This document shows positions 6,819 to 45,430 of a DNA stretch of 64,000 nucleotides, piece by piece. The position numbers and the translations under genes were made by a program. This DNA comes from Laetmonice hystrix. Lineage: Eukaryota. Each line of letters opens with the position of its first letter. The first letter of the stretch is position 1. The stretch covers positions 9,238,001-9,302,000 of the forward strand of contig OZ249445.1 of assembly GCA_965235115.1 (NCBI GenBank), written 5' to 3'. The notes under the pieces were generated by a model. It did not search any database, had not been told where the DNA came from, and saw only the letters and a program-made list of their open reading frames with translations.

Positions 6819-9800
6819 CTCCAGATTGCCTGAACTTCATGCAGAACGGTAGTGAGCTGATCAAGGTTCGTTCAAACAGTCGCCAGTACCACCGGCTCTT
6901 CTCACTCGACCAAGAACTACAGGAGATCCGATGGCAACCCTCCTCCAAGAAACCACAAAAAGCCAGAAGTGAGTTCCTCAGGGGTTGGTAGACGGATCGG
7001 TCTACACCCACCAGACTAATTATATCAAGTTGACCGAGCCGCGTATCTCACTTAACACACATAAATGGTCGGCGCGTATTTAAATGGAGAATACGTGTAG
7101 ATCGGACTCTTGCAATATGGCACCTCTCACACCTCCTGTGTTGTTGAGATGTGGAATTATAGGCCATCATAATCAACATAATCGCCATAATCATAATCAA
7201 CATAATGAGGTCAGCAATTTAATCATGTGATCAATAATATCAACTATTTAAAAATGGCATGACTGATTATGAAACTAACGGTCAGTATGCAAATTACATT
7301 CAGCAACCCAGTATTTCCAGCACCTTTGCCAAACGCGAATAACTAACCCAAAAAGGCAACCAAAAAGAAGAAGGACAAACAAAATGTAATCAGCATTATC
7401 CGTGAGTTTTTGGAATAATACGGGTTTTGAGTTAATGCTGATACAGCCTCATGAATACTTGCTGAGGCTGGCTCCCCGCCTCCGGATAGAGTCGGACAGT
7501 TTCTTGTTTGTTTTCAGTCCCAATCAACCAAATCAAGGAGGTTCGTGTGGGTAAGAACACGGACATTCTAAGGAACAGGGACATCGCCGGCCATTACCCG
7601 GACGAGTGCGCCTTCTCAATCATCTACGGCGATAACTTTGAGACGATGGACCTGATCGCCAACACTCCTGATGAGGCTAACATCTGGGTAACTGGTATGA
7701 CGTGTCTCATCACCGGCCGCACGAAGAACCAGGGTGAGTACCGGCTCCTACGTCAGGAGCCCCTCCCACCCCTCCCCCAATGATAAAAAAAACCCTTCCT
7801 TTATTATCTCCTCCCTCTACATCTGTCGGAGCTACATGATTGATGGACTTTTGATTAATAAAATGGGTGTCATAGCGAGTGGATGGTCTCCAGGATCAGG
7901 CAGTCGTGAGCGGACACAGTGAGGGTAGGTCATGCAAGGCCCTACCATCACGATGTTCGACAAGATCGGAAATTAATGTTGCCCTCAAAGTTCCTAGGTG
8001 ATGCCATTACCAGCTTGCCCAATCTGGGGGCGACGAAAACTTTGAAAACATTGAAAAACACCTCCTGATTTATTAAGTTATTTTTACCTCTCCAGAAGAG
8101 CAAGAGGTGGACAAGTGTAACTTCATCGTATGTACATGCACATGTACCGGTACATGTACTTTACATAGTGGCCCGTTTTAACCTCAGTCCTGGTACATGG
8201 AACCGACGGAACTCATACATCTATCATGGCTGGACATTATCCATAGACACAAGTCAGATGTGGCGATTTGATTGGAAACCAATTGGCGTACACGATGCGA
8301 TTTGATTTCGTACTTCCCATACATTTCGTCTGGCCTGTTGAAGGGCTAGTTGGTGCGTTCTGGTACGCTGGAGTGCATTACCTACATTAAAGCCTGTGTC
8401 TGGGATCTCGGCATGAACGGGCGCGTCTAATACATTTAAAGGCTATCAGAGATATTAAACCCGCGCACTATATAAAGTGAATGTCCCGCATGTTCCGTTT
8501 TAGCAACATTTGCTGCACTTATAAATGAATTATAAAGAAATGTGTTTTTTATTGAATTGAAGTTGAGCAGTAACAGTGCCTTGGGCTCTCCCTCGGGGTG
8601 CACCACCGCCTGTGGAATAACTTCTGTTTAAAACATGGAAAGAAACACATTTTCGTTTTCAGTTAAAAAGAAAGTAGTAATCAAAGGGGAAATGATGACA
8701 TTGAATTTGAAAGTAGACAAGGTTAACTGCATAATCTAGACAGTTGTCAAGCTCTTTCACCATTGTCACCTATTATTGATGGCTAAGAGAGAAACAGCTC
8801 GGGGTCAGATGAATTAACCCCTGAATCCTCATGTCCTCTAGTATTTAACCAATGATAAATCGTCGTTAATTTTCCACATTGAAGTCACTTTGGTAGCCGT
8901 CGGACCATAAAGATTTCGTGGATGGCTCAACCACGGGAAGTGCAGGGGTGAGTCTGTATCATGTCTGCAGCCTTCACATCTCTCCATGCCGTGTACTGAC
9001 AGGAGACACGGACGGGGAATGTAAGGTCCATCACAGAACATGAAGTGCTGGCCAGGCACCTCATGACATGCCCACATTGGGTAAATATATCGGAGCAGGA
9101 AGCTCATGACATGCCCACAGTGGGTAAAAAGGCTGGGGCGTCAGCTCATGACATGCCCACAGTGGGTAAACAGGCTGGGGCGTCAGCTCATGACATGCCC
9201 ACAGTGGGTAAATATATGGGAGCAGCAAGCTCATGACATGCCCACAGTGGGTAAACAGGCGGGAGCATGCAGCAAGCTCATGACATGCCCACAGTGGGTA
9301 AATATATGGGAGCAGGAAGCTCATGACATGCCCACAGTGGGTAAACAGGCTGGGGCGTCAGCTCATGACATGCCCACAGTGGGTAAAAAGGCTGGGGCGT
9401 CAGCTCATGACATGCCCACAGTGGGTAAATATCCGGGAGCAGGAAGCTCATGACATGCCCACAGTGGGTAAACAGGCTGGGGCGTCAGCTCATGACATGC
9501 CCACAGTGGGTAAACAGGCTGGGGCGTCAGCTCATGACATGCCCACAGTGGGTAAATATATGGGAGCAGCAAGCTCATGACATGCCCACAGTGGGTAAAC
9601 AGGCGGGAGCAGGAAGCTCATGACATGCCCACAGTGGGTAAATATATGGGAGCAGCAAGCTCATGACATGCCCACAGTGGGTAAATATATGGGAGCAGCA
9701 AGCTCATGACATGCCCACAGTGGGTAAATATATGGGAGCAGCAAGCTCATGACATGCCCACAGTGGGTACATATATGGGAGCAGCAAGCTCATGACATGC

Positions 9801-12800
9801 CCACAGTGGGTAAATATATGGGAGCAGCAAGCTCATGACATGCCCACAGTGGGTAAATATATGGGAGCAGCAAGCTCATGACATGCCCACAGTGGGTACA
9901 TATATGGGAGCAGCAAGCTCATGACATGCCCACATTGGGTACATATATGGGAGCAGCAAGCTCATGACATGCCCACAGTGGGTAAATATCCGGGAGCAGC
10001 AAGCTCATGACATGCCCACAGTGGGTAAATATATGGGAGCAGCAAGCTCATGACATGCCCACAGTGGGTAAATATATGGGAGCAGGAAGCTCATGACATG
10101 CCCACAGTGGGTAAACAGGCTGGGGCGTCAGCTCATGACATGCCCACAGTGGGTAAATATCCGGGAGCAGGAAGCTCATGACATGCCCACAGTGGGTAAA
10201 CAGGCTGGGGCGTCAGCTCATCTCATGCCCACAGTGGGTAAACAGGCTGGGGCGTCAGCTCATCACATACCCTCAAACATTAAACAGGCTCGAGCAGGCA
10301 GCGACATCCGGGGCTGACAGCTTACACCATACCCACAATATGTACGTTGCTTAAAGTGGCGGCCAGGGTCTGGTATACTGATAGGGTTTTGCTGTCAAAT
10401 TGCATTGCCTGAAATGGAAATTAGATGTGTCTGCCCTGTCCTACGCCTCCCCACCCGCCAACACAGCCCCCCTCCCAATCAACCCCCCTGGCAATCCCCG
10501 AGTCTCACAGCTCCGTGAGGAAGAAGACTGACAAGTGATGGCGGCCAGGTCTCCCGGGTCCTGTCAACGTCTTGTCGGGCGTTCTCTTCTTGGAATGTGA
10601 ACGCCTGCCAAGGTGGCGAATAGAGCCTCGGCTGGTGTGGTCGTCCCGCCCGACTGGCTAGCCTTACGCCCCCAGGCTAACACAGGCTGATCTCAGGCGA
10701 TATCTACACTTAGAATAAACCAAGGGCTCCTGGGGTCAGACAAGTTAATAGATGTTCCCTAAATTGTGTGTGTTGTTTTGTAGAGTGATCGGTATGGTTC
10801 TTGTGTGGATTGTGTTATATGATTGTGTATAAGGTATGGCTAGAGAAAGCATACCCGGTAGTTGTTCTGTGTTTTCCTCATCTACGGTACTCTTCTTTTC
10901 AGAGGACGGAGAGCATTTATTTATTCATTACTGGTGAATTGGATTGATATAAGGTGGGATTATTAAAAAAGTTAGATTAGTAAATTTCTCTATGAATATT
11001 AATGGTTGATGGCAACAAGAGAAACTACTGGGGCTGGGAGGTCCGACCAGACTCGGTCGGTGTCACTCAAACTGATCGTGTTGTGTGGTTGTTTTCTATT
11101 CAGTTGGAGCGGAGGGCGGCGAGGGAGCAGGTACGTCAGTTGTTGTCGACATCTTGTCTCCATAGTACGGCCGTCATACGGCAGATTTAGGGGTAGTACA
11201 GGTCTCTTGAGACCTCTGATCATTGCTGTTCCTACACAATTACTGACAGGAGACGTAACCAAGGAACATGTTAGCGTTCAGTGGGAGGTGTTTTGTAAAT
11301 ATTATTATGCATGCAGGTATCCAATGGATGGATGGGCGTCAGAAATAATACAGATTAACTTTTTGGGGACCGGCTGTACGATGACGGCTACAGGTTATTT
11401 GCTATTTTGAGTAGCTATGATAGAGTTTCCGATCATTTTCAAAACTTTAAACAAATTTGTAGTCTTTATTTTTATATTGGTCGGGTAGAAGTCCTTGACT
11501 TGAAAGTATTCCCAGAAAAAGTCTGAAGACAGAATAATCATGCAATGTGTGGATGTGTATCGCCCAGAGTAAGGATTTTCAGCAAAATTGAAGAGGACAG
11601 AAAATAAATGTCTTCATTCGGTTACAAATAGCAGCAGGCGGATGGATGAAGCACGCGATAAGAAAGGTCAGGTCTGATTGGTTGGAGGTTCTGCTCGGAC
11701 ATGCGTACTGAGTAGGGCTTCGTGTTCAGCTGTCTGGCGATTGGCTGTGGTCGGGTGTAGTGTCACGTGACTCTCCCACTTTGTGTCCCCGTACGGCGGA
11801 GTATGGCAGCCACCTCCCCCGGTAATTGCCCTCCGTCATGTAGTGTTAACCTGCCTGGCATTCTTCTCCCGATACTGGATATTGATGGCTATTTTAAAAG
11901 TTCTATTTAGATTAAACTGTAATTGTTCTTCACTGGACAATAAATAGATTCTGAAATTTAGAACAAAAGTCGAAGTTTGGTTTGTCGGAGTTGGACACAG
12001 CCGACCGATCAGACTTGAACTGGAAACTCTCGGCTTTCTGATGGTGGTACAGATTAGGGTGGAGATTGGTCAGCAAGAAACAGTCAGCTTTAAGGTGAGG
12101 GTGCTTAGCTAATTATGGCCGTCACTCTTTGTGGATATATTTGTGTCCTTATGTCTGATCATAAAGGAATTTTTTTTCTCATATTAACGTTTGTCCGAAA
12201 TAATACCTGGATATATTCTAATGTCACCTCCAGTTCAGCTGCCAAGTCCCGCTGCAAATGGCAGCATGTGTCTTAAATATCGATGCAATGTCCATGTGAA
12301 AGATGGCCGAGGTATTCCGCAGTCCAAATGTTAAAGAATACATTGTGGGCAAATGTTAAAGAATGCATTGTGAATGTAAGAATACAGTTGTTTATTACGT
12401 TTCCCCAGAAACAGCACACATTACCGTTATGTTGGCATGAAGCAGTTTCCCAAACCCTGGAAACTAAGCAGTTTCCCAAACCCGGGAAACTGACTGACGG
12501 CTTGAACAATGCTGAATTCAAGAGTGATGACAAGCACGCCCAGAGAATGGCCACTAACCGCTCTCCAGGCGTTTTGTAAAACAGGCCAATAACCCTCTGG
12601 ATATTGATACCAGCGGATGAAGAACCTGGGAAGACTAAAGACGCCTTTTATTCAAACTGATCTCTGTTTTGCCCAGGGTAGTTATAACTGGTCGCTGCGC
12701 TATTTACCAAGTCATTGAGCGCGGAATTGCTTTTCGCGCCTTCCTATATTCAGTGGTCCGGACTAATGTTGGTCAAGAGCTGCTGTTTAACTTGGCAATC

Positions 12801-15800: not shown

Positions 15801-18800
15801 ATATAATATAATGTATGCATTCCAGGAATTTAATAGAAAACAGATTAATATTTCAAGAGGAGGATGAGATTTCATTGTGTAACGTTTTGTTAATGCTTCA
15901 GTGAGTCCCTCTTTAGACAGACTTCATTAAGAGACCGACCAGTATCCAGAGGGATTGGGGAAAGGGTATTTTTTATAACATCTCAAAGAAATCTTGTTGG
16001 ATGCTGAGAAAACATGGTATATGTATCTTTTGGAATTCGTTCTCCACGGCCGCTGCTGAGTTGAATCCATGTAGCAGATTATTGGGACTAGATTGCTTAA
16101 ATACAAAACGTAGTGTCGCGATTCAACATAATAAGATTACATAGCGGGTAATATTGATATCGTTGGATGGAGAGGAAAGATTTATGCAAATTTACTGAAC
16201 AAATTTGAGAGGATCACATTCTTCTCATGAGGTCGAAATGTTCGGCGAAAGGGATATTGTCATAATAATTGATGTGAAGTCCTGGTGAGGAATACGCGAA
16301 TCATTTGTTCAATTACCTAAGAGGCCTCAGAAAAAAGTTGTTTCCTGCTGTTGTTGCTGCTGCTGTTGCTATTGTTGTTGAGATTTTCAGGGCAGACCAT
16401 CATTAATATTTTCATTGTGTGGGCAGAGTGACATAGATTTGTTTGTTTCTCTTTCAGATGGCTCGCGTCACCAAAGACAAATGTCTTGATATCATAGATA
16501 AATTTGAACCTTCCAAAGAGGGCCGGAGGAAAGGACACCTGGGTATTGATGGTGAGTGTCGGGATGAGGGTTGGGGGTGGGGGGCCACGGGTCGTCTGAT
16601 GGTGAGTGTCGGGGTGGGGGTGGGGGCCCACGGGTCGTCTGATGGTGAGTGTCGGGGTGGGGGCCCACGGGTCGTCTGATGGTGAGTGTCGGGGTGGGGG
16701 CCCACGGGTCGTCTGATGGTGAGTGTCGGGGTGGGGGGCCACGGGTCGTCTGATGGTGAGTGTCGGGGTGGGGGTGGGGGCCCACGGGTCGTCTGATGGT
16801 GAGTGTCGGGGTGGGGGCCCACGGGTCGTCTGATGGTGAGTGTCGGGGTGGGGGCCCACGGGTCGTCTGATGGTGAGTGTCGGGGTGGGGGCCCACGGGT
16901 CGTCTGATGGTGAGTGTCGGGGTGGGGGTGGGGGCCCACGGGTCGTCTGATGGTGAGTGTCGGGGTGGGGGTGGGGGCCCACGGGTCGTCTGATGGTGAG
17001 TGTCGGGGTGGGGGTGGGGGCCCACGGGTCGTCTGATGGTGAGTGTCGGGGTGGGGGCCCACGGGTCGTCTGATGGTGAGTGTCGGGGTGGGGGCCCACG
17101 GGTCGTCTGATGGTGAGTGTCGGGGTGGGGGCCCACGGGTCGTCTGATGGTGAGTGTCGGGGTGGGGGCCCACGGGTCGTCTGATGGTGAGTGTCGGGGT
17201 GGGGGTGGGGGCCCACGGGTCGTCTGATGGTGAGTGTCGGGGTGGGGGCCCACGGGTCGTCTGATGGTGAGTGTCGGGGTGGGGGCCCACGGGTCGTCTG
17301 ATGGTGAGTGTCGGGGTGGGGGCCCACGGGTCGTCTGATGGTGAGTGTCGGGGTGGGGGCCCACGGGTCGTCTGATGGTGAGTGTCGGGGTGGGGGCCCA
17401 CGGGTCGTCTGATGGTGAGTGTCGGGGTGGGGGCCCACGGGTCGTCTGATGGTGAGTGTCGGGGTGGGGGCCCACGGGTCGTCTGATGGTGAGTGTCGGG
17501 GTGGGGGCCCACGGGTCGTCTGATGGTGAGTGTCGGGGTGGGGGCCCACGGGTCGTCTGATGGTGAGTGTCGGGGTGGGGGCCCACGGGTCGTCTGATGG
17601 TGAGTGTCGGGGTGGGGGCCCACGGGTCGTCTGATGGTGAGTGTCGGGGTGGGGGCCCACGGGTCGTCTGATGGTGAGTGTCGGGGTGGGGGTGGGGGCC
17701 CACGGGTCGTCTGATGGTGAGTGTCGGGGTGGGGGCCCACGGGTCGTCTGATGGTGAGTGTCGGGGTGGGGGCCCACGGGTCGTCTGATGGTGAGTGTCG
17801 GGGTGGGGGCCACGGGTCGTCTGATGGTGAGTGTCGGGGTGGGGGTGGGGGCCCACGGGTCGTCTGATGGTGAGTGTCGGGGTGGGGGCCCACGGGTCGT
17901 CCTGAGCAAAAGGACCACAGCAAGGGACATTGAGGAAGGTGGAGAATGTTTTATTTCACTGACAAAAACGCTCTTTTGTGAACAGTTGTACACCTCCGGT
18001 AAACTTGTTTGTCAGGCAGTTTTGTCTGTTGGACTACAACAAATGATTCTGAACGTACATCTGAACGGTTTATGAGACAGGTGACGTTTATTCCACGTTA
18101 AATGGGATGTTTTCATTGTGTACTTGCAGGCTTTACGCGGTATTTACTATCAGAGCAATGTGACACATTTGATCCCGAACATAAAAAGGTGTGTCAGGAC
18201 ATGACCCAGCCACTCTCCCATTACTTCATAGCGTCTTCACACAACACGTGAGTACCTGTCGTATCATGTTACCATATCTGGTCGACACAACGGGAACGGG
18301 CTAACACGTGGTCGTACATCTCAGGTTACAATAAAACCGCCATGTCATTTGTGACATCTCAGGTCACAATAAAACCACCATATGTCATTGTGCCACTTGA
18401 TTTCAGTTCTCTGACGTTGCAATGTTAAAGTTAAATGTATTTGAAAAGTCCCAAGAGAAAAACAAAGGATGACTGAGTGTGTTTGTGTGTTTGTATACAG
18501 GTATTTATTAGAGGACCAACTCAAGGGCCCATCCAGTATAGATGGCTACATTCGGGCCTTACACAAGGGGTGCCGATGTGTTGAATGTACGTGTGCAATT
18601 CTTATTTCTGCTAAAGGTGTTTTGATAAAGGTGCATTTTACTGCTCAGCAACTTTTAGAAACATTCAGTATACTAGTTTAGAGTGAAAAAAGAAATTCTC
18701 GGAAAAAGTGTAGTCAGCTATCGTTCCGAAGATGAATAAGTTTGGCTTAATTTAGAGGACCTGTTCTATTCTGATTGAAAGGCTACTAATTTGACCTGTC

Positions 18801-24800: not shown

Positions 24801-27474
24801 AAACAGTGAAAGAAAATGGCAGGGAGTAAACAGGAAGACAGGGTTGAATTAAAGATATGTTTGAACTCGGACTGAAATACAATTGATACAGAGTAGTAAA
24901 TGATAGGTATCAACATTCTTGCACATCGAAACGTCAGATAAACTATCTGACCATATGTTATGATCGTTTGAAAAAAAAAATGATAAGAGAGATTCCTGTT
25001 ACAAAGAGAGACTCGGAGGTTAGTGTGAGTGGTTCAGCGGAAGTAGGGTGGTATTGAAATATGTCTCATTCACGTATTCATTGCCTATACCTCATCCCTC
25101 CTCCTCGAAAAATAAAAAAATCACCCCCCCCCGCTTTTTTTACAATAAATTCACAGCGTTTAATAAAAAAAAACTGCCATAACTCTTTTTTCGGAATATT
25201 CAGAAAGCGTCAAAACGCGGACTATCGGTGAGGAAAAGTCGAAAAAATCGAGAGTATACAAGCATGAAGTCTGTAGGCATCAAATGTGTGGACGAAACCT
25301 TCAAAGTAGGTTATTTTATCCTTTTTATTAAAACTTCTGAAGTTATTTGAAATTCCAATTGCTTGCCGAAATATCTTGCATTCGTACTTAAAAGTTGTGG
25401 TATTTTTGAATGCACATTGACCGGGTGCCATGACGTTTGTACAGGTCGCTATCCAGCCACTCCGGGATGGGACAGATTTACGAGACAACGTCCAGGTGGC
25501 GCTGGCTGTGTTTAAAGAGAACTGCGGGCTGGCTCCGATATCTAATGTCAAACAATGTATTCGTATGTTGAGTACACGCATAGCAAGTTCGTGTGAGAAC
25601 GTCACCTTACAACTCATTATGAAAGGGGAGGTAGGAATGAGATTGGAATTTGTTTTTCTCTGTATTAGTTTTGTAACAAAGATTTCAATATGTGGTGATC
25701 AGGCAAAAGCCAGAGAATGTAGTGCAATGTATGGATCTTACCTGTTTTTAAGTACATGTATTGCACCGTCCAGCAAGTTAAAAAAAAAATTGTTGTTGAT
25801 TTTTTTTCAGTTCCCGTATTTGGAAGTGCAGGGCAACATACCGGACATTCTGAAGAAGGCGTTGGTTTCCTTTGAGAATGTAAGTGATGGACTGTTGGTC
25901 GAAAGGAAGGAATCAAATAATAACCTTCTAAAGTAAGGATCACTGGTTGTAAAAATCTTGTTCAATAAAAGCAGAGCTAAACTGTAAAGAGTCAATATAG
26001 GAAGTGTTATCAGAAATCTTATTTGACGATTGTGCTTCTCTGCTTGATGTCCAGGTCAGAGAGTCGAAAATTTTATCGTGAACCTACCAAGGCCAGCAAC
26101 AATTTACTGTGAGACATTAATGAGGCTTTCTTTATTTTACAGCTTGTTTGTGAAGCCAAAAACTTGATCAAACACGCAGATGAGGTGCATGAACGGGTGA
26201 GTATTCAATAACCACAACCTTAAAAGATATCAAATATCTTAGATTTCTTAGCAGTCAAATACATGAGCTGAGGAAAATGGCAAAGTTACTATTGAGGTCT
26301 CGTTGTCGGGTTTGCTGTATATACGCAGTGTTTGAAGGCTGTCCGATATTAAAGACTTACTATTTGTTGCGTGGGGGCCAGTTAAACCATGCTCAGCAGG
26401 CTGGCATGGAGTGGCACGAAGAACTCAACACGATCGCCCAGCAGAGTGGACTCAAGGGCAAGAAACTCAACAAGGTCAGTAGGTCAAGGTCATTGATCCT
26501 TTGTAATTGTGTGCAAATCTGAAGTGGTTGAGGTAATAGATGTTATTCTAGTTATACCATTGTAGAAGGAGTGGCTATTGTAAACGGCTAGAGTCGTTTT
26601 ATTTGCGTACTAGCCTGTATAACTGTAGACGCTGAAAGGAAGGACTGACAAAACATGTACACGTAAGTTGTCAAGATGGATTGAATGGGGAATTCTGGTC
26701 ATATGTGGTCCGTTCAATATTCGTACATGTATATGGTGTGGTATCTGTTGCGAGGTATTTAGGAATGTATTATAAAGTTAAGTTCTGACACTTTGACTTT
26801 GAGTACATTTCATTATCTATCCCAGCGATATGTGTAGTTTCTTTCTGTCCCTATTCATTCGCCTCGTTTCTGTGGCAGGCTATGGAGAATTTTGCTTGGA
26901 ACATCCGTGTTTTGAAAGGACAGGCCGATTTGTTAAAACAAGCCCAACATGAGTGTGTGGAGTACATGAAACAGGTGGGCAAAATTATCTTTTCATCTAT
27001 ATAGTACCAGCAGAGGTGTTAATGATAGCTGCATAGTGGGACATCGTACAGCCAGAGGTGTTAATGATAACTGCATAATGGGACATCGTACAGCCAGAGG
27101 TGTTAATGATAACTGCATAATGGGACATCGTACAACCAGGGGTGTTAATGATAGCTGCATAATGGGACATCGTACCACCAGAGGTGTTAATGATACCTGC
27201 ATAGTGGGACATCGTACCACCAGAGGTGTTAATGATAGCTGGATAATGGGACATTGTACCACCGGAGCCGGGGGTGTTAATGATAGCTGCATAATAGGAC
27301 ATTGTACCACCAGAGGTGTTAATGATACCTGCATAATAAGACATTTGTAAAATGGTGTCATCTGATTTTGAAAACTATAATCATATGTTTCAGGTTCAAG
27401 AAGCAGCCATATCGACGGGTCTTGTGAAGGACCTGAAAATTTTCAGTGAGACCCAAAGCTCATCCACCACCTAA
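6819..27474 (+). CDS. PLCL: Phospholipase C-like protein (PLCL1/2, PRIP family): PH, EF-hands, X/Y catalytic barrel, C2, C-terminal helical tail; 5'-partial, about 973 codons reconstructed
   Basis: 25 GT-AG exons with consistent phase: 6819-6968, 7518-7733, 13833-13872, 14956-15085, 15325-15434, 15620-15686, 16458-16551, 18130-18247, 18501-18586, 18858-18975, 19171-19339, 19548-19643, 19743-19845, 20247-20426, 20989-21167, 21357-21495, 21687-21833, 21989-22086, 25204-25305, 25445-25630, 25811-25879, 26143-26196, 26382-26474, 26879-26974, 27394-27474 (TAA). Motifs: [23 protein letters not shown] (PH), SSHNTYLLEDQ, GCRCVELDCWDG, IYHGHT, SIENHC, SRVYP, ALNYQT, C2 domain, and the PLCL-specific tail KRGLSVRK...[20 protein letters not shown]. 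Confidence 0.95.
9059..10270. repeat. Minisatellite, 42-43-bp units: constant core AGCTCATGACATGCCCACAGTGGGTA plus 2-3 recurring tail types, about 28 copies
   Basis: Seen directly inside PLCL intron 7734-13832; ORFs 9045-10317 are repeat read-throughs. Confidence 0.95.
11670..11821 (+). promoter_or_regulatory. Putative internal promoter and short alternative first exon (MAATSP) of PLCL
   Basis: ATTGG (reverse CCAAT) at 11677 and 11740, palindromic E-box GTCACGTGAC at 11762-11771, ATG at 11803 in strong context (A at -3, G at +4), phase-1 donor G|GTAATT at 11821/11822 compatible with exon 13833. Confidence 0.5.
13873..14955 (+). other. U12-type (minor spliceosome) GT-AG intron in PLCL
   Basis: 5' site GTATCCTTT (13873-13881); branch site TTTCCTTGAT (14935-14944) about 12 nt from 3' site CAAAG; no real polypyrimidine tract; splicing gives in-frame ...MRDQ|WLQEVF. 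Confidence 0.85.
14157..14345. repeat. Three degenerate copies of an about 50-bp unit (TTTCATGGTGATG..AGAATGGACAGGTGCTTAAAGAGA)
   Basis: Copies near 14157, 14209 and 14306, inside the U12 intron. Confidence 0.7.
16545..17901. repeat. G-rich minisatellite, 36/37/43-bp units (GATGGTGAGTGTCGGGGTGGGG(GTGGGG)GCCCACGGGTCGTCT), about 35 copies, starting at a PLCL exon end
   Basis: Seen directly; each unit repeats the exon-end/donor GATG|GTGAGT. Explains the three Pro-rich antisense ORFs within 16317-17993. Confidence 0.97.
19872..20038. mobile_element. 167-bp fold-back (palindromic) MITE-like element flanked by AT dinucleotides
   Basis: CTGGGCCCAGTTTTTCAAAAATTCTCAACTTCAGTAAAGCTTAC...AGGCTTCTGATTGGCTGG mirrored by CCAGCCAATCAGAAGCCT...GTAAGCTTTACTCAAGTTGAGAATTTTTGAAAAACTGCACCCTG; AT at 19870-71 and 20039-40. 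Confidence 0.8.
22644..22921. mobile_element. 278-bp MITE with about 52-bp TIRs, TA-flanked
   Basis: GGCTGGGTTTCCATAGCAGTTCACGCTTCACGTGTCA at the left end; TGACACGTGAAGCGTGAACTTCTATGGAAACCCAGCC at the right end; TA at 22642-43 and 22922-23. Confidence 0.85.
27003..27345. repeat. Minisatellite, 42-bp unit (GTACCACCAGAGGTGTTAATGATAGCTGCATAATGGGACATC), about 8 copies
   Basis: In the last PLCL intron, starting about 28 nt after the donor; gives the 14-aa-period ORFs at 26993-27361. Confidence 0.92.
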
Positions 27475-32432: not shown

Positions 32433-35400
32433 ATGAAGACTCGATTCTCCTCCCTACTCCTCCTCATCACAGCAATCAGCTGCCCTCTCTCCCCGGAGGC
32501 TGCGATTTGCATGGACTCAATCTGTGAGTATGAGTTCAGCGTCGACCTGACCCGCACCATGCAATGGCTCGGTCCTGGCGGCAACTATTTTGACGTACGA
32601 CTTAACGGGAGCAATGTCCTTCGTGTGGTGGCGACGGCCTGGGTTCAACCAACTGACCCAACCGTGGGCACGGTGGTCGATCCGGACGACGTGATCACTG
32701 CTGATGGCATACCACGGAACATCATCACCATCAACGGACAGTTCCCGGGACCTACCCTGGAGGTCATGGAGGACGCCCAGGTAAGAATGGGGAGAAGGAG
32801 GGTGGGAATCAAGGTTTTCTATCCCACCCTGCAGGGCCTTAGTCAGTTATACTGAGCCCCACCCCCACCCTACAAAATTTACCCCCGGGGTAGGACTAGG
32901 AAGAAGTGACTTTTATTTATGAGTGTTCACGGCAGGGTAGGACTAGGATGAGAAAAGTAGCATTCCCAACCTATGAAGCTGCGTGTCCACAGGTCCGGAT
33001 GCGGACACGGTTACGGATACGGATTTTTAAAAACACATTACAAATATAGGAACTGTGTCGGATCGGTCGCCGTGTCCGGACCCGCATGAGTGGACACAGT
33101 CCCTATATTTGTAATGTGTTTTTAAACATCCGTATCCGTGTCCGCATCCAGACCTGTGGACACGCAGCTTAACGGTTTCTGTATAACCCCTGAACAGGTG
33201 GTGGTGAGAGTGACCAACAACCTCCCATCGGAAGGAGTAACTATCCATTGGCACGGCCAGCACCATCGGGGAACATGTTGGATGGACGGCATCCCGTACA
33301 TCACCCAGTGTCCCATCCACCCCCGGCAGTCGTTTACCTACCGGTTCATTGCCGACCCTGCCGGTACCTTCTGGTACCACACCCACATCGAATACCAGCG
33401 CATGGACGGACTGCAAGGTTCGTCCATCACCTACACATGACCGGTTGTCAATGTGACGCCCGTGCGATTTTAATTTTGAGCTAGAAATCCCGCTGTAACA
33501 TATCCTCGGGGTCCATCCGCGAATACTGGAGGACATGGGATCCATCTATTAAACTCAGATTCAAACGGACGTCGCACAGACAATCGCTTCAGTGTGTATG
33601 GCCCCCAAATGCCCTTAATCTCCATTGCTGTGTGTGCGTAGGCTTATAGCAATTTTGATGTTGATTTCATTCATGGTAAAGTACAAGAAATGAAAAGTAA
33701 TACCGGTCATCGTAATACATTTCTTGCCCTATTTCAGTCTTGTACCACCCCCGTCCAGAATGCCCATGGTTGTGGTGGTGTATGCTGACCATCCGTCATG
33801 TTGTTATTACCAGGTATGTTGATCATCCACCGGACAGCGCCCTCCATGCCGTATTTCCCGGTGATGATCCAGGACTGGCGCCATGAGACCGGCCAGACAT
33901 ACGGCGCCGCTAACCGTGGGGCAGGCTCCGATTTCTGGGTCCGGTCCCCCGTGCCTGACATGGTGGACACTACAATAAACACCATCCAGGTTTGGATCAG
34001 TGGTCTCATTAACGGCCGCGGCCGGGCCGACCCAGGCGAGCAGCTCCCACTCACCGTGTTCACAGTCTCCCAGGGGACCACCTACCGGTTCAGGGTGGTG
34101 AACGCTGGGGCCGAGACGGCCCTCATCGTCTCTATAGACGGACACACCCTGGCTGTTGTAGCCTTGGATGGGTTTGAGGTCAGAGCTATCAAAGTGGACC
34201 GCGTCATCCTGGGACCGGCCGAGAGGGTCGACTTTGAGGTGGTCGCTGACCGCCCCGTGGGACAGTATTGGATGAGGTCGAAGAAACTGTTGGATCCAAT
34301 GCTGGGATTGGACATGCAGGAATCGTTGGCAATTGTTAGGTACGAGGGCTTCCCGGGTGAGGATGACCCGACCACGAGCTCCAAGAGTTGCACGTCGTCA
34401 GACCGGTGCGTCGAGTTTAACTGTCCGTTCTGGTACTACCCCGACTTCTTTTATATAGACTGTGTCCACATAGAGGATGCAAGACACGAGTACACGTTGA
34501 AAGAGTTCGCTGAGTATGACCTTTCCAATGAAACCCCAGAACGAACCTATTTCTTCAATATACAACTTTTTGAGGGAAGTTTTAATTTTAATGGAATACG
34601 GGACGTTGCGCGGTCTGTTCCAGTCTTTCAAACTGACAGCATGCCAGTATCCTGTGAGGGCTGTGCTGTGGATGAGTCTTGTACATGCACTCATAGAATC
34701 AAAGTTCCTTACAACAAGATTGTTCATCTCGTTCTAATAAACCGACGACAGACGCCTGGTCCGATACAGGCCCACATCATCCACTTACACGGCCACCACG
34801 GGGCAGTGCTGGCCCAGGGCTTTGCTAACTACACGTACGGCGGGCCCAGTAACAGTATCCGTCTCACCCCTAACCCGGACATCGAGTGTGACAGCCCCGT
34901 GTGCCGGGAGGCGTTCTGGAGTAACGGGCAACCAACCCTCAACCTGGACGAGCCGCCCCTCAAGGACAGTGTCTACGTCCCGGCCTCCGGGTACACGGTG
35001 TTACGGATCCGTACGGACAACCCTGGGCCCTGGTTTCTTCACTGCCACATGCAGCACCACCTGGTGGACGGACCCCTGAGACTTCTGCTTGAGATTGCTC
35101 CGGACCGTTACCCGCCCGTGCCGCCACACTTCCCGACTTGTCAGAAACAGTTTGAACTGACCACCAAACAGTTCTACGACTTGCTGAAGGATGCAGCGGA
35201 CCAGAGGAAAGCGGGTGGCTTCACCCGAGTGGACCCGAAACGCTGTGTCGATGATGGCGATGATGGCGACGATAGCGACGATGATGATGGCGACGATGAT
35301 GACGACGATGATGACGACGATAAGGGCCCGAGTACGGACGGTATGACATACGTGTATTCATTTCATCTTCTCCCTGTACATGTCTCTCGTTGTGGCGTTT

Positions 35401-35927
35401 CCAAAGGCAGGGGAGGCGGTCTGCCACGGCCATATCATTTCTTTAAGAATATTTACATTCCACGACAATAGTAAACCACAGCTGTAGATTTTCTGTCTTT
35501 TGCAAATCCAAGATAATTTACCCGTCCCTGACATGTTTAAAGATTGTTTTATATAAATAATGCTTCAGCAAGATATATGGACGCCGTATATCCCTATTGT
35601 CACATACAACGAGGAATCTCGATAAAACTGTAACTCTGATTCAATGTACTCAAGTAAAGATTTAGAACATTTGATATCAATAAACAAGTTGACAATGTTA
35701 AACAGCTGTTAGCCGATACCATGTGAATAATACCTGGATATGATTGTGATTAATTGGGAATCGTTTTGTCTTCAGGAGACGAGGAACTGCAGCTCAACAT
35801 GCTCCAGATTATTGGTATCTTCATTGCTGGACTAGTTGTTGGCTTCCTCATCACACTGGGAGCATTTCTAATGTTTATCTGCTGCCAGAGAATGCGACAA
35901 CGGATTATTGTTAAACCTGTCATGTGA
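32433..35927 (+). CDS. Three-domain multicopper oxidase (laccase/ascorbate-oxidase-like), 748 aa: signal peptide, Cu-oxidase domains, Asp-rich stalk, C-terminal TM helix
   Basis: Exons 32433-32780, 33198-33417, 33814-35340, 35776-35927 (TGA), phase-consistent. N-terminal MKTRFSSLLLLITAISC; INGQFPGPTL; copper motifs IHWHG, FWYHTH, HIIHLHGH, WFLHCHMQHH (10 His + Cys); last exon encodes IIGIFIAGLVVGFLITLGAFLMFICCQRMRQR. Confidence 0.95.
32976..33170. mobile_element. 195-bp fold-back MITE-like element in laccase intron 1
   Basis: AAGCTGCGTGTCCACAGGTCCGGATGCGGACACGG...AAAAACACATTACAAATATAGGAACTGTGTC is mirrored almost perfectly by the right arm ending ...GACCTGTGGACACGCAGCTT; flanks TGA/TAA resemble a degenerate Harbinger-type 3-bp TSD. 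Confidence 0.85.
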
Positions 35928-35942
35928 TTACCAGGACAGGTA

Positions 35943-36714
35943 TTCCTCTCTGAGATCAGGTCAGTCAGACAACACGGACCAGTTGATTACACCTGTGTCT
36001 GAGATCAGGTCACTCAGACAACACGGACTAATACCTCTCTGTCTGAGATCAGGTCACTCAGACAACACGGACCAGTTGATTACACCTGTGTCTGAGATCA
36101 GGTCACTCAGACAACACGGACTGATTTACCTCTCTGTCTGAGATGAGGTCACTCAGACAAGGCGGACTTAATACCTCTCTATCTGAGATCAGGTCACTCA
36201 GACAACGCGGACTGATTTACCTCTCTGTCTGAGATGAGGTCACTCAGACAACGCGGATTTAATACCTCTCTGTCTGAGATCAGGTCACTCAGACAACGCG
36301 GACTTAATACGTCTCTATCTGAGATCAGGTCACTCAGACAAGGCGGACTTAATACCTCTCTGTCTGAGATGAGGTCACTCAGACAACGCGGACTTAATAC
36401 CTCTCTGTCTGAGATCAGGTCACTCAGACAACACGGACCAGTTGATTACACCTGTGTCTGAGATCAGGTTACTCAGACAACGCGGATTTAATACCTCGCT
36501 GTCTGAGATGAGGTCACTCAGACAACGCGGACTGATTTACCTCTCTGTCTGAGATCAGGTCACTCAGACAACGCGGACTTAATACCTCTCTGTCTGAGAT
36601 CAGGTCACTCAGACAAGGCGGACTTAATACCTCTCTGTCTGAGATCAGGTCACTCAGACAACGCGGACTTAATACCTCTCTGTCTGAGATCAGGTCACTC
36701 AGACAACGCGGACT
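35943..36714 (+). repeat. Minisatellite, about 45-bp unit, 17 copies, each with an 8-bp perfect stem TGTCTGAG-N9-CTCAGACA, directly after the laccase stop codon
   Basis: 17 copies counted between about 35950 and 36710; linkers of 3 recurring types. Confidence 0.95.
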
Positions 36715-37631
36715 TTTGGTAACGGTTTCAATGATTATGTTATTACTATATAATTAGTTGCAAGACGCGTTGTTTATCTAGTGAGCTTCCTACTACTAAC
36801 AATAGTTTAACACGAAGAAAATTACTCGACAGACTATTTTGTTATTTTCACAAATTATATCAGGACAACTTTTATAGAATAAATTATCCTGCATTCAGGA
36901 CATCGTATTCGATCCTATGATAAAAATTGTAGTTGGATGGTCCCATTGGTTTCACGAACTCTCTCTATGCTAATATTCAAAATTACCATGCGCCAAGTTC
37001 GAGGTACACTGTATTGCCTGTCTTTACCTATGCGTCCACGCCTGGTGGGTCAAAGAATGGCCGACCGACGCCAGGCCACCTGGCAAGATGATAAGTGAAG
37101 GAAGGGCGAACCTTTGACAGAAGGCAGTGAAGGAGATCACTTGACGATGCCCGTGTATTACGTATTCCTGCCATTTGAACGTCCGCCCATTTAACCCTTG
37201 GATGTATCTATTGTATAAGGTTACACCTACCTTCTGTCACTAACATGAACGCCAATATAACATTTGTCTTGTTTGCTCCCTTGCTTGTTGCTAACTTGAT
37301 GAGCACTTTTTAAAGGCAATTATATCTTAGAGATGGGGGACCTGAGAGCAATTTTAGGTCGCAAACATTTACCGTTTGCCGCAGTGTATACATGTACATG
37401 TATATTATGAAGATATGTGTGTTTTGCCGTGGCCTATGACAATGTGCTGAGGCCGAGTTAAGGTCGATATCTTCTTTGTATCGAGCTCTCGAGCTTTGTA
37501 TCGAGCTTGATGGCCATGGCAGCCATGACCAACAGTGGGCAATAGTAGGCAACAGCTGTATGGTCAGCGGCCAGCTGACATTGCCACTGGCCGACTGGAG
37601 GGTCAAAGTCATGATATGATGTCAAATGGAA

Positions 37632-38478
37632 TTACCTAATCCAAGAGCCCCATGTTGTTGGCCTTCAGAAACAAGACCATCTCCCATTTACCTAATCCAA
37701 GAGCCCCATGTTGTTGGCATCCAGAAACAAGACCATATCCCATTTACCTAATCCCAGAGGCTCATGTTGTTGGCATCCAGAAACAAGACCATCTCCCATT
37801 TACCTAATCCCAGAGGCTCATGTTGTTGGCATCCAGAAACAAGACCATCTCCCATTTACCTAATCCAAGAGCCCCATGTTGTTGGCATCCAGAAACAAGA
37901 CCATCTCCCATTTACCTAATCCCAAAGGCTCATGTTTTTGGCATCCAGAAACAAGACCATCTCCCATTTACCTAATCCCAGAGGCTCATGTTGTTGGCAT
38001 CCAGAAACAAGACCATCTCCCATTTACCTAATCCCAGAGCCCCATGTTGTTGACCTCCATGCAGAAGCAAGACCATCTCCCATTTACCTAATCAGAGAGC
38101 CCCATGTTGTTGACCTCCATGCAGAAACAAGACCATCTCCCATTTACCTAATCCCAGAGCCCCATGTTGTTGACCTCCATGCAGAAACAAGACCATCTCC
38201 CATTTACCTAATCCCAGAGCCCCATGTTGTTGGCCTCCATGCAGAAACAAGACCATCTCCCATTTACCTAATCCAAGAGCCCCATGTTGTTGGCCTTCAG
38301 AAACAAGACCATCTCCCATTTACCTAATCCCAGAGCCCCATGTTGTGGACCTCCATGCAGAAACAAGACCATCTCCCATTTACCTAATCAGAGAGCCCCA
38401 TGTTGTTGGCCTCCATGCAGAAACAAGACCATCTCACATTTACCTAATCACAGAGCCCCATGTTGTTGGCTTCCCATT
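37632..38478. repeat. Minisatellite, 56-bp units changing to 60-bp units (TTTACCTAATCCCAGAGCCCCATGTTGTTGGC...CAGAAACAAGACCATCTCCCA), about 15 copies
   Basis: Period 56 around 37687-37743; period 60 from about 38030 where CTCCATGCAG replaces ATCCAG. Confidence 0.93.
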
Positions 38479-41872: not shown

Positions 41873-42327
41873 GGACACCTGTCGGAGGATTGTGTAACTA
41901 AACACCTATGCTGGTAACATAGGCTTAAAATTGTGTCTCAAAAATTCTTGTTCCAGACTCAGTTGTAATAACGCCCTACATGGTTTTAATTGAACAGGTT
42001 TTCAATTGGACATACTTTTCATTTTTGTCTCATGTATGGGCTATTTGAGATATAAATTTGAGATATAATTTACTCCGAGTCCATAGGGCCTATGGGTAGG
42101 CCTACAAAGTTATGTTAATTACTTAATAATAAAAAAGAATAAAATAAAAAATAGGGTAAATAGGGTTTTTGAAATATGTAACCCGAAGGTTCCACAAGTG
42201 TTTTTTTTATGCGCACCCTATATAGAGTCTAATACACACTCATGAAGTCTTTCCATCATGAGTCACGTCTGATCTCTTTCATTGTAGAGGACCAGTAGCT
42301 ATAGGTTTGTGACAGTAGAAAAGGAGG

Positions 42328-44851
42328 ATGGTGTCCAAACGGTACTTTGTTGCCAAGGCGGCAAATATGGATGCCTTGCGTGGCTGCCATGGAAACAGTA
42401 TTTGGGCATGCAAAGGACGGAAAGCACTGGACCAACCCAAAGAATTTCTGACTGAAGCATTTGAGCAAGGACCAGTGATGCTGATATTCAGTGTGAACAA
42501 CTGTCATGGTTGGCATGGATACGCACATTTGTTATCAAAACCAGGATCTGAAAATTCTGACGTTCTCACAGGGGACGCTACGGAAAGGACGGGAGGTGAT
42601 TACTCCTCTCAAAATGTGACTGACATAGACTCAGTTCCTCACATTGTAGAACAAAACACCACAATGTCTGATATCAAATCTCACGGAGAATTATCCATTG
42701 ATGTCTCAGCAACGCATGTTGTATGTTCGGAGGAAAGAGAATGGCACCGGTTCAAGATCTGCTGGTGTTGTATTTATCTGAAGGAGCACGGCGAGCAGTG
42801 TTTACCCTTCTCCCGTACACACCACCTCCATACAATGGACGGTACTCCACTAAACAAGGCGCGCAACTTTCAGGAGATGTCTGAAACCTCTGGGAAAGAA
42901 ATATGCGATCTTATAGAAGGCCATTATCGAAAGTTGTCAGAGGCCGTCCAGAAAAAGAGAGACGCCAAAGTACCCGCCCCTTTCTTTAAGCCAACAGGTT
43001 CCCACGACCCCCATGTGTTGTGGCGCCGTCTGGTACAGAAAGTTGAAGCGATGGGGGAAGTGCTGCTGGCATGTGCGTTTGGTAGTCAGCGGTGAGTAGA
43101 GAAATAACAACAGCAACAACAAAACTAACAACAATAACAGAAACTACTTGATGCAGTATAATCCTTCAGATTAAAGACATGAGTGTTATATTGAGTTTCA
43201 AACAGAGTGGTTTATTAGATTTCGTACAACGATAGACTACATTCAAAAAGTTTCAAAAAGTGTTTGTAAGTTGTACATCCCATGCCTATAACAGATTCAA
43301 TGTTTTTCGATAGGTACAATCTCCAAACTCCAGAGAGCGACATAGATATGTTCATTGTATATGCCTCCCCCACCAAACGGGTTCTTGGTTTTGACCCACC
43401 TCAGCAAACCATCAAGGTAATTTAATTGTCATTTTATAGGTATTTTATCATTATCAACATATTTAGGCAAAAACAATGGTGCAGGCACGTTTGTCACTTA
43501 ATTTTTAAAATATGTGCATGTTTGAATGTTTCCTCCAGAACCGAGATACAGACAACACGTGTGACTACACAATCCACGAGGTCCACCGGTACTGTGAGCT
43601 CCTGTTGTCGGGCGATCCGCGCTGTGTTGAAACGTTGTTCCTTCACCCGTCCACCATATACTCTGCTGCCCCCTGTTGGCAGAATCTCGCACTACACCAA
43701 CGCTGCTTTCTCACCAGGTACAATTACAAGTACAAGTGATAGATCATTTATGCATTTATCATCCTAGCAAAAATTAGGATCATAAGCCTATATAGGCCTA
43801 ATTTGTTATTCATGATTTGATTAATAAGTTTATCATAGAGAACCCAGCTAGGCTATGCCAGTAATTTAATAACATATAGGCAGTATACTGATGCTTGACA
43901 TGGCATTTTCCTATTGTTTTGTGGAAAAGATATAGTAATACTGTCTTTCGATGAACAGCCAATGTCGGGATAAATATCTAAGGGATGCTGAGGGGGCGAA
44001 GGGCCTGCGCCAGATGCAGAAGTGGGCGACCTCAGGCGAGGCTTTGGTGAACCCAATGCCTCAGAAGGTCAGCAAACTCTTCTACGTTATCATCCGCCTT
44101 TTGCAGAATGCACGGTAGGTGGCGCTGCTGTATCTTTGTCCGTCCTCATTCCCTCAAGCTCACTCATTCGCTGGGAGAGAGTTTAAAAACAACATGAAGA
44201 ATGATTATATCGTTCGAGTAAATTATCTTCCCTGTTGGTTTTCTCGGATAGAATCTATTTGTTCAGGCCTGATCTACAGACTTCATTCGTAGACTAGTAA
44301 TGACACTTTTCTTGTTGGCTATGTTTGAAATCTCCACTCCAGTGACGTCGCCTTGAATAGACCTGTAGCAGTGTTTCGACAGGAGGGGAGCCCTGAGAGA
44401 GATCTTCTCATGGCAATCCGTACTGGTAGCTTCCAATATGGTGATGCCATGCAAGAGGTTGAAAGGTAGGCCTCTTAGTCTGTTCAGCCAGTTAATTCTT
44501 AGAAGTAAATTAGGGACAATTGCTTACAGAACGACAAGAGTAATTTCTACAGAAATGGCGTGACCGTCATCGGATGCCATGTGATAGGCTCGAAGAAAAA
44601 AGAAAAAAATTGTATTAAAAAAAACCCGGCTCCGTACACACCTATTAGTTACTATGTTATCGTTGACTGCTGGTGCTGCTTTTGACAGATTACAGGCTGA
44701 CATCAAAGCGGCGGCGGCGGCGCTTGGTTCGTCCGAGAGTCACCAGGGGGCAGCACAAGAAGTTGTTGAGGACTGGCTGCTAGAACTGCGTTACAGAGAC
44801 CTCAAAGCGTACATGCAAAAGTACCAATCTGAGGGGGACCATCTGAAGTAA
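42328..44851 (+). CDS. YTH-domain / Pol-beta-superfamily nucleotidyltransferase (RlaP/PF10127-like) fusion protein, 495 aa
   Basis: Exons 42328-43091, 43314-43416, 43539-43717, 43959-44114, 44343-44465, 44689-44851 (TAA), 1488 nt in one frame. YTH motifs RYFVAK...IW...AF...VMLIFSVN..GWHGYA...F...W...LPFSRTHHL...KARNFQE; NTase motifs FGSQRYNLQTPESDIDM, DYTIHEVHRYCELLLSGDPRCVETLF, LLMAIRTG, VEDWLLELR. Confidence 0.88.
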
Positions 44852-45199
44852 CAGAGACAGATTTTAATGCATTCCAAAGGAAGTACCTCTTGGTCTATTA
44901 AAAGCAAGTCATCGTCTGAGTGGTGGTATTTAATAAAAGTGGATAACTTAAACAGGGAAGTCCTTGCATGATGTCGGTCCTTTTATATTTACCTCTTACA
45001 TATCTATAGTTCTATATCTTTTCCGTTTGTTTTGATGCAATATTAGGATTCCCAAAATAAAGGTTCTAACATTAGGCAAACAAGTTTTTTTTTCAAAATA
45101 AATAAAATAAAACGATGTTGGATAGTGAAAATTAGACCCAAGGACATTTCATTTCCTGGATCCATATATATATATTCTGAGCCATTAAAGAGCATTGCT

Positions 45200-45430
45200 G
45201 TTTTTATTGGCGAAACGTGGCCAGCCCAGAGATGAGAGTGGGTTGCCGCCCGTGTGGTGATTGGTGCTGTGTTTTGTACCCACCCACCTGAGGTGGGCGG
45301 GGCACTTTTGGCCAATAAATTCCCAGGAACCAGACGCGCCTCACGCTGTCTTGTAAACATCGCGAACCCTCCTGCCGCGGTGTATAAAACCGTGTATAGA
45401 CAGCGCGGAAATATCCATATCGAGTTTTGA
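45200..45430 (+). promoter_or_regulatory. Putative promoter of the PLEKHA-like gene
   Basis: CpG-rich patch with ATTGG at 45260, GC box GGGCGGGG 45295-45302, CCAAT 45312-45316, E2F-like GCGCGGAAA near 45403, about 450 bp upstream of ATG 45856. Confidence 0.4.

Follow-up and report, generated by a model that had tools for sequence, protein, structure and literature searches.

A six-exon gene of Laetmonice hystrix predicted to encode a YTH domain fused to an RlaP-type nucleotidyltransferase

The locus and its gene structure

The DNA analyzed here, referred to throughout as the window, is a 64-kb stretch of contig OZ249445.1 of Laetmonice hystrix. On its forward (+) strand, from the ATG to the TAA at 42328..44851, lies the coding region of a gene, hereafter YTH-RlaP, whose predicted product joins a YTH domain to a Pol-beta-type nucleotidyltransferase (NTase) of the RlaP family (PF10127). 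The original prediction, made from the letters of the window, had spliced six exons into a single frame of 495 amino acids (aa), and this model stands: every exon border is of the GT...AG type, the exons sum to 1488 nt, which corresponds to 495 codons plus the TAA stop, and the translated product aligns from end to end with its homologues. Residue numbers used below are those of this spliced window protein, and all parts of the gene lie on the (+) strand. Upstream of the ATG in-frame stops are found close by, and a TATA-like hexamer (42219..42224), a candidate element found by pattern match only, is located 104 nt 5' of the ATG. At the other end, an AATAAA hexamer (44932..44937), again a pattern match only, lies 81 nt 3' of the stop and is likely the polyadenylation signal of the gene.

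Exon 1 (42328..43091; residues 1-254 plus 2 nt of codon 255, with the GT donor at 43092) encodes the YTH domain, a linker helix, and the first helix and strand of the NTase together with its G-S pair. Exon 2 (43314..43416; residues 255-289) carries the metal-binding carboxylates and the invariant K289, and exon 3 (43539..43717; residues 290-348) the third catalytic Asp and the GDP..ETLF motif. The C-terminal helical domain begins in exon 4 (43959..44114; residues 349-400, with the stretches KYLRDA.G.KG and RLLQNA, found in the same exon in Saccostrea and Owenia), continues in exon 5 (44343..44465; residues 401-441) and is completed by exon 6 (44689..44851; residues 442-495 and the stop), which supplies the last helix, W471 and the invariant R476. 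Because exon 1 encodes both the YTH domain and the start of the NTase, including the G-S pair, the two halves cannot be separate transcription units unless the NTase itself is split.

Residues 5-486 of the spliced protein align to full-length homologues retrieved with exon 1 alone as query from Owenia (45% identity, E 5e-145), Lingula, Lineus and many molluscs, and the homologues aligned from end to end comprise annelid, brachiopod, nemertean, mollusc, sponge and protist proteins. The genomic loci of Saccostrea and Owenia have a six-exon layout identical to that of the window gene, in which a long exon 1 ends right after GSQR and is followed by exons of about 35, 60, 53, 41 and 40 residues. 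Transcripts are available for relatives: an intact 454-aa open reading frame (ORF) with YTH and RlaP, belonging to a cluster of 350 sequences, is carried in two runs by Logan contigs of 1.66-1.74 kb. As the gene is interrupted by five introns in the closest oyster genome, these contigs are processed mRNA, and TRINITY transcripts of the amoebae Arcella and Flabellula likewise contain both domains. The objection, anticipated in the original prediction, that the two halves might be found on separate transcripts is thus answered by exon 1, which spans both, and by the oyster transcript contigs, which carry both in one ORF. The locus is single-copy in the 627-Mb, 35-contig assembly, and on its sequence 42328-44851 reads as one functional single-copy animal gene.

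Two folds in one protein

The YTH domain occupies residues 4-196 (42337..42915), as delimited by Pfam PF04146, an AlphaFold2 (AF2) model and the match to solved structures. Exon 1 matches the Pfam profile with 56.3 bits (E 3.6e-15, cut-off 22.1 bits) over positions 1-134 of 135, in line with the 56.5 bits obtained for YTH at this locus in a six-frame search of the genome. The AF2 model of residues 1-205 has a mean predicted local distance difference test score (pLDDT) of 84.6, with values above 95 in the core and of 49-64 in a variable insertion of the beta4-beta5 loop (residues ~72-135, 42541..42732), which is predicted to be disordered and keeps neither its length nor its sequence across the family. 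Among solved structures, nine YTH chains match the model with Z 15.9-19.6, followed by a group of EVE/ASCH-like folds with Z not above 11.9; the best match is the YTH domain of YTHDC2 (Z 19.6, root mean square deviation, rmsd, 2.0 Å over 126 aa). On the model, then, the N-terminal half is with certainty a YTH fold.

By its sequence this YTH domain is nevertheless divergent: members of the YTH-RlaP family score 43-88 bits with Pfam YTH, whereas canonical YTH proteins retrieved in the same search reach 130-300 bits. The family profile is nearest to the DC-type, with AtCPSF30 (CPSF30-YTH) at E 3.5e-23, YTHDC2 at 3e-18, YTHDC1 at 1e-13 and YTHDF at 1e-12. DC-type domains (YTHDC2, YTHDC1, plant CPSF30-L, Toxoplasma CPSF4 and S. 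pombe Mmi1) have the same fold (Z 17-20, rmsd 2.0-3.1 Å), are matched by the family profile at E 1e-13 to 4e-23, and share with the window family the first aromatic-cage tryptophan, two strands (FSVN and F..V.W) and the R-x-QE motif. Unlike them, the window family has a long variable insertion at the second cage tryptophan, Ala, Ser or Gly in most members at the position of N367 of YTHDC1, RN instead of RD in the R-D-x-QE motif, and motifs of its own, NN[CQ]HGWHG and FGEQCL; its YTH domain is moreover fused to an enzyme, while in DC-type proteins the partner is a helicase, a zinc finger or a low-complexity region.

The catalytic motifs of the second half were found exactly where the original prediction had placed them. 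The hG[GS] motif of Pol-beta NTases, G252-S253 (43081..43086), is invariant in 35 homologues and present in the window protein; the catalytic DxD, D264-I-D266 (43339..43347), is invariant in the family; the third catalytic carboxylate, D298 (codon 43563..43565), stands in an invariant column within CDYTIHE, the predicted DYTIHE, which also contains E303; and the RlaP-type motif past the NTase core, G314-D315...E320-T-L-F323 (43611..43640), has D315 and E320 invariant. The longer stretches LLSGDP..VETLF and, C-terminally, LLMAIRTG and DWLLELR are present as well. In all, 24 columns are invariant in the 35 homologues (F7, K10, W26, S55, G64, F142, W146, R179, N180, G243, G252, S253, Y256, N257, S263, D264, D266, K289, D298, D315, E320, G361, G364 and R476), and each of the 24, including GS, DxD and the third Asp, is kept in the window protein.

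Assignment to RlaP was approached with Pfam run on the exons separately and on full-length orthologues, and with a hidden Markov model (HMM) of the orthologues against which the spliced window protein was scored. Taken singly, the exons lie below the Pfam cut-off of 23 bits, exon 2 giving 13.0 bits for RlaP (E 0.085; NTP_transf_2 at E 0.003) and exon 3 a weak 11.9 bits, with the two matches collinear on the profile (positions 33-63 and 66-120, respectively). The same order is seen with the phage nucleotidyltransferase family phrog_388 (exon 2, E 4e-4, profile 49-77; exon 3, E 1.2e-6, profile 85-141), which the orthologues match at E 1e-23 to 1e-37 (best 8e-37). The first ten full-length homologues all pass both the YTH and the RlaP cut-offs (RlaP 30.8-56.3 bits against 23), and five of six further YTH+NTase members pass RlaP, Spironema, Balamuthia, Platysulcus and Corticium among them, Arcella being just under it with 22.1 bits; 15 of 16 full-length homologues thus score 30.8-77.2 bits. 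Against an HMM built from the NTase halves of the orthologues, the window excluded, the NTase half of the window protein obtains 364.6 bits (E 9e-111), while 200 shuffled sequences obtain at most 2.3 bits. Identity between orthologues and phage genes annotated as nucleotidyltransferase is 25-41% over the matched parts, the higher values referring to the catalytic core only.

The two-part build of NTase core and helical domain was tested on the Owenia orthologue, whose model (pLDDT 89.3; predicted template modeling score, pTM, 0.68) shows strands and helices at 210-313 and then helices at 315-464. Compared with a bacterial RlaP cluster of the ESM Atlas, its NTase half reaches a template modeling (TM) score of 0.87 (target-normalized) over 229 aa, and its helical domain is HEPN-like in the structure search. 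The Foldseek listing for the PDB held YTH entries only, and the NTase half emerged from other structure searches, including that of the ESM Atlas; the NTase-type neighbors in the PDB are HalB (Z 8.5), the uncharacterized 3c18 (Z 8.0), and LinB, ANT and DrrA (Z 6-7.5). Judged by these profiles and motifs, the second half of the window protein is assigned to the PF10127/RlaP-type Pol-beta NTases, with an intact catalytic triad. The profile and structure comparisons that had been proposed with the original prediction therefore both agree with it, PF04146 being found on exon 1 and PF10127 on nearly all full-length homologues and, weakly and collinearly, on exons 2 and 3, and the YTH model and the Owenia NTase half each matching their own fold.

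Distribution of the family and allelic variation

The search for the same architecture elsewhere was productive, with members across lophotrochozoans, a sponge and protists. The animal members come from many bivalves and gastropods, one chiton, the annelid Owenia, the nemertean Lineus, the brachiopod Lingula and the sponge Corticium, and the protist members from Amoebozoa (Balamuthia, Arcella and Flabellula), the stramenopile Platysulcus and the hemimastigote Spironema; the window gene itself is an animal gene, as predicted, but the architecture is not specific to animals. Among 1.84 billion representative proteins, 108 matches were obtained at E not above 1e-3, the weakest being ordinary YTH proteins. 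In a maximum-likelihood tree the molluscs form one clade whose inner branching follows taxonomy, the window protein groups with Owenia, Lineus and Lingula without a resolved branching order, and the sponge, and beyond it the protists, branch outside. Taken together, these sequences point to an ancient, patchily retained and uncharacterized eukaryotic family. The member from Platysulcus tardus (1025 aa) has a YTH domain and two NTase-type regions, of which the first (~198-268) resembles NTP_transf_2 and the second (792-955) is a stronger match, to RlaP; its NTase may have been duplicated in tandem.

It had been left open in the original prediction whether the architecture was unreported. In databases it is not: more than 40 orthologues already carry precomputed PF04146 and PF10127 annotations, under the labels "uncharacterized protein", "YTH domain-containing protein" or "nucleotidyltransferase", and the ESM Atlas has a 74-member cluster whose automatic name refers to both domains. 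A literature search linking YTH with RlaP, PF10127 or an NTase fusion retrieved no paper, a mention of eukaryotic fusions in the paper that named RlaP not being excluded. What is new is therefore an unstudied variant of RlaP with a reader domain in eukaryotes, whose architecture is already catalogued automatically and to which the window adds one orthologue. The database proteins with both domains (Lingula LOC106173084, Aplysia LOC101860115, Lottia LOTGIDRAFT_228195, an unnamed protein of Owenia and the "YTH domain-containing protein" of Balamuthia) are orthologues with 38-45% identity over the full length, the same domain order and all invariant residues in common, and with a matching six-exon structure in both genomic loci compared, Saccostrea and Owenia; there is no difference in kind. 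The Laetmonice copy was absent from the protein database searched, and its YTH loop insertion is among the longer ones of the family. A scan of IMG/VR for the YTH-RlaP fusion found none, hence no sign of a viral carrier.

The Laetmonice genome also contains a canonical YTH gene (C20:17371682-17372086, 187 bits, inside a 490-aa open frame) and a further YTH-matching exon elsewhere (C1:55459626-55459796); given these, YTH-RlaP is a divergent YTH lineage additional to the usual readers.

Independent DNA contigs from three sequencing runs cover the locus and its introns, and their comparison with the assembly gives 39 single-base differences. Thirteen are exonic, eight of them synonymous and five nonsynonymous; none of the latter (R87T and H119P in the disordered YTH loop, A241T, A453V and E490V) falls in a conserved motif. 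The density of single-nucleotide polymorphisms is 0.9% in exons and 2.0% outside them, and the exonic indels are all of 3 nt (codons 128 and 449), whereas non-coding indels are mostly of 1 or 2 nt. The loop insertion of the YTH domain (residues ~72-135) takes up two of the five nonsynonymous variants and one of the in-frame 3-nt indels. The YTH-RlaP gene is under purifying selection. In addition, an allelic deletion of 23 nt is seen at the border of exon 2 and intron 2 (43415-43442), between two copies of AGGTA; being flanked by these copies, it is equivalent to an intronic loss in which the same AG/GTA donor is rebuilt.

Possible function and other features of the window

The name RlaP, reportedly given by Burroughs and Aravind in 2016, reflects the genomic association of the family with RNA ligases. 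A survey of jumbo phages repeats the prediction that nucleotides lost from an RNA are put back by RlaP ahead of ligation. Biochemical data come from two Pseudomonas enzymes, PfRlaP and PaRlaP, which add one or two nucleoside monophosphates (NMP) onto an RNA 3'-OH, with little preference among nucleoside triphosphates and with Mn2+ favored, and are inactive on DNA, protein and 3'-phosphate ends; in the crystal structure of PfRlaP, an NTase core is followed by a helical domain (December 2025 preprint, bioRxiv 10.64898/2025.12.29.696909). By profile the window protein belongs to the same NTase family as bacterial and phage RlaP, with GS, DxD and the third Asp intact, and it has the same NTase core and helical domain, with the last helix packing back. 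It differs from the prokaryotic and phage proteins in being eukaryotic and intron-bearing, in its N-terminal YTH domain and in having no adjoining RNA ligase. TUT4/7, the TENT family and CCA-adding enzymes, which perform untemplated addition at RNA 3' ends, belong to the Pol-beta superfamily too, and the orthologues have weak matches to NTP_transf_2 and to an MTPAP-like palm; nonetheless, these enzymes form another family within the superfamily, a PAP-associated domain is absent, and none of them carries a YTH domain, so that the likeness is one of logic and not of membership.

The most likely function, held with moderate confidence, is that of a YTH-guided RNA 3'-end nucleotidyltransferase adding one or two nucleotides onto a 3'-OH. 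The 495-aa protein starts with its divergent YTH domain of DC type, followed by a long linker helix and by the RlaP Pol-beta NTase with its C-terminal helical domain; in the proposed mechanism the YTH domain would guide the NTase to RNA, the NTase would add 1-2 nucleotides at the 3'-OH, and the RNA end would be remodeled or restored ahead of ligation, decay or reuse. The 3'-end chemistry is carried over from bacterial RlaP, and the RNA substrate and any modification specificity are what we infer. The original prediction had proposed an enzyme that adds nucleotides to, caps or repairs RNA ends, possibly in antiviral defense; of these options the addition of nucleotides is the supported one, because bacterial RlaP adds 1-2 NMP at a 3'-OH and does not act on a 3'-phosphate, whereas capping, phosphate or cyclic-phosphate ends and antiviral defense gained no support.

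To our knowledge, the YTH domains of all proteins studied to date act through the recruitment of other factors, whereas here the YTH fold is fused directly to the type of enzyme that edits RNA 3' ends in bacteria. At least four eukaryotic supergroups have retained the fusion, and its catalytic residues are invariant among them; next to YTHDF, YTHDC1 and YTHDC2 it is, in many invertebrates, a fourth YTH lineage that has been overlooked. The family could reveal a reader-coupled activity that modifies RNA ends, provide a first function for eukaryotic RlaP, and show what is recognized by a YTH pocket without one cage tryptophan.

Several observations weigh against this proposal, beginning with the RlaP chemistry itself, which comes from the two Pseudomonas enzymes of the preprint, both distant from the window protein. 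A PDB sequence search gave no solved-structure relative of the NTase half, and a word-based search with the NTase half alone returned YTH-fused relatives only, so that nothing was learned from it on the nearest unfused RlaP. The orientation of the YTH domain relative to the NTase is predicted with moderate confidence (pTM 0.68). No linkage with an RNA ligase of the bacterial kind is seen, the RtcB exons lying on contig C13 and the YTH-RlaP gene on C11, a separation without bearing on homology because operon-type linkage is not expected in an animal. In the sequencing-run search the locus was contained in the three runs mentioned above, all of them DNA and including the introns, and in no RNA run, so that expression and the 43091/43314 junction draw their support from homology only.

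The last group of such observations concerns the pocket for N6-methyladenosine (m6A), which was mapped via sequence alignment only. W26 (codon 42403..42405) corresponds to the first cage residue (W377 of YTHDC1, W411 of YTHDF1) and is invariant across the family. The loop tryptophan (W428 of YTHDC1, W465 of YTHDF1) has no conserved counterpart, the variable disordered insertion being located there, which speaks against m6A reading; phmmer places C133 at this position of the window protein. At the third position (L439 of YTHDC1, W470 of YTHDF1), protist members except Spironema have Leu, while in animals and Spironema a Trp is found one residue later (W139, codon 42742..42744). The residue that bonds N1 of the base (N367 of YTHDC1, D401 of YTHDF1) corresponds to Ala16, with Ser, Ala or Gly in most relatives and Gln in Platysulcus, and since Ala16 replaces this polar residue the window protein is not classed as an m6A reader. 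As far as the alignment goes, only one canonical cage tryptophan appears clearly kept and m6A reading by the window YTH domain is unproven. Hence, of the ordered YTH motifs noticed originally, the fold was borne out (56.3 bits, Z up to 19.6) but m6A recognition was not established, the loop Trp and the N1-bonding residue being unmatched.

Among the alternatives, that of a strict m6A reader, comparable to YTHDC1 or YTHDF, whose NTase would tail m6A-marked mRNAs and steer their decay or stability, is considered unlikely. The fold is unmistakably YTH, the first cage tryptophan is invariant, W139 in animals stands beside the L439/W470 position with Leu kept there in the protist members except Spironema, and the canonical YTH genes of the genome make an m6A system presumably present; on the other hand, the loop tryptophan has no conserved counterpart, Ala16 stands in place of the N1-bonding residue, the Pfam YTH scores are low, and bacterial RlaP adds 1-2 nt and no tail. 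In addition, Mmi1 illustrates that a YTH fold need not read m6A. A further proposal, also doubtful, is that the re-shaped YTH pocket might read a modified adenine other than m6A (e.g., a bulky N6-modified A near the tRNA anticodon) or damaged RNA, and thereby steer RlaP to restore the 3' ends of cleaved tRNA or rRNA before RtcB acts. If this were true, it would represent a modification-guided RNA repair that was ancestral in eukaryotes and survived in lophotrochozoans, sponges and several lineages of protists, other eukaryotes having lost it.

Quite improbable is an NTase that would not extend RNA 3' ends but would make a signaling oligonucleotide (HalB-/CD-NTase-like), nucleotidylate a protein or small molecule (DrrA-/ANT-like) or act on N6-methyladenine (6mA) in single-stranded DNA (ssDNA). 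It is to HalB, 3c18, LinB, ANT and DrrA that the nearest solved NTase structures belong (Z 6-8.5), YTHDC1 also binds 6mA in ssDNA, and YTHDC1-6mA ssDNA complexes are among the PDB matches; however, those Z-scores are within the range graded as a common arrangement, the domain is RlaP by sequence and predicted structure, the two RlaP enzymes with assay data use RNA as substrate and leave DNA and protein unmodified, and PADLOC gave no defense-family match. An NCBIfam scan gave no match either. Finally, two adjacent genes, a pseudogene, a mis-assembly or a contaminant instead of one working gene would be in keeping with the missing RNA run, and are very improbable, the first two being rejected outright, in view of an exon 1 that spans the YTH-NTase boundary and the G-S pair, a frame open through six exons and spared by the allelic variants, orthologues in over 40 species that share the architecture and exon layout, coverage of exons and introns by independent DNA contigs of three runs, and the position of an intron-bearing gene among animal genes on a chromosome-scale contig.

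Elsewhere in the window, a single-exon ORF of 557 aa at 33798-35471 (+) is laccase-like, with Cu-oxidase and Cu-oxidase_2 domains and no Cu-oxidase_3 within the ORF; its best matches are unnamed ENA proteins (57% identity), its best named match is from the tubeworm Ridgeia (37%), with annelids leading the named matches, and it includes a GAT/GAC-rich acidic repeat at 35250-35323. Together with the gene tree, this ORF suggests that the host is probably a lophotrochozoan outside the molluscs, perhaps an annelid. On the opposite strand, three overlapping long ORFs of 454-558 aa at 16317-17993 (-), with no Pfam match, were rejected as a gene, being an artefact of a G-rich minisatellite of 37 bp whose array extends over 16574-17901 (~35 copies, 94% match). 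The window is rich in minisatellites, others of which, with periods of 35-64 bp and 8-28 copies, are found at 314-884, 1930-2460, 9060-10242, 27004-27344, 35949-36715 and 37632-38474. Some 450 bp past the YTH-RlaP stop, at 45270-45400 (+), the promoter of the next gene may be represented by two elements, one resembling a CCAAT box (ggccaataaa) and the other TATAAAA-like (gtgtataaaacc).

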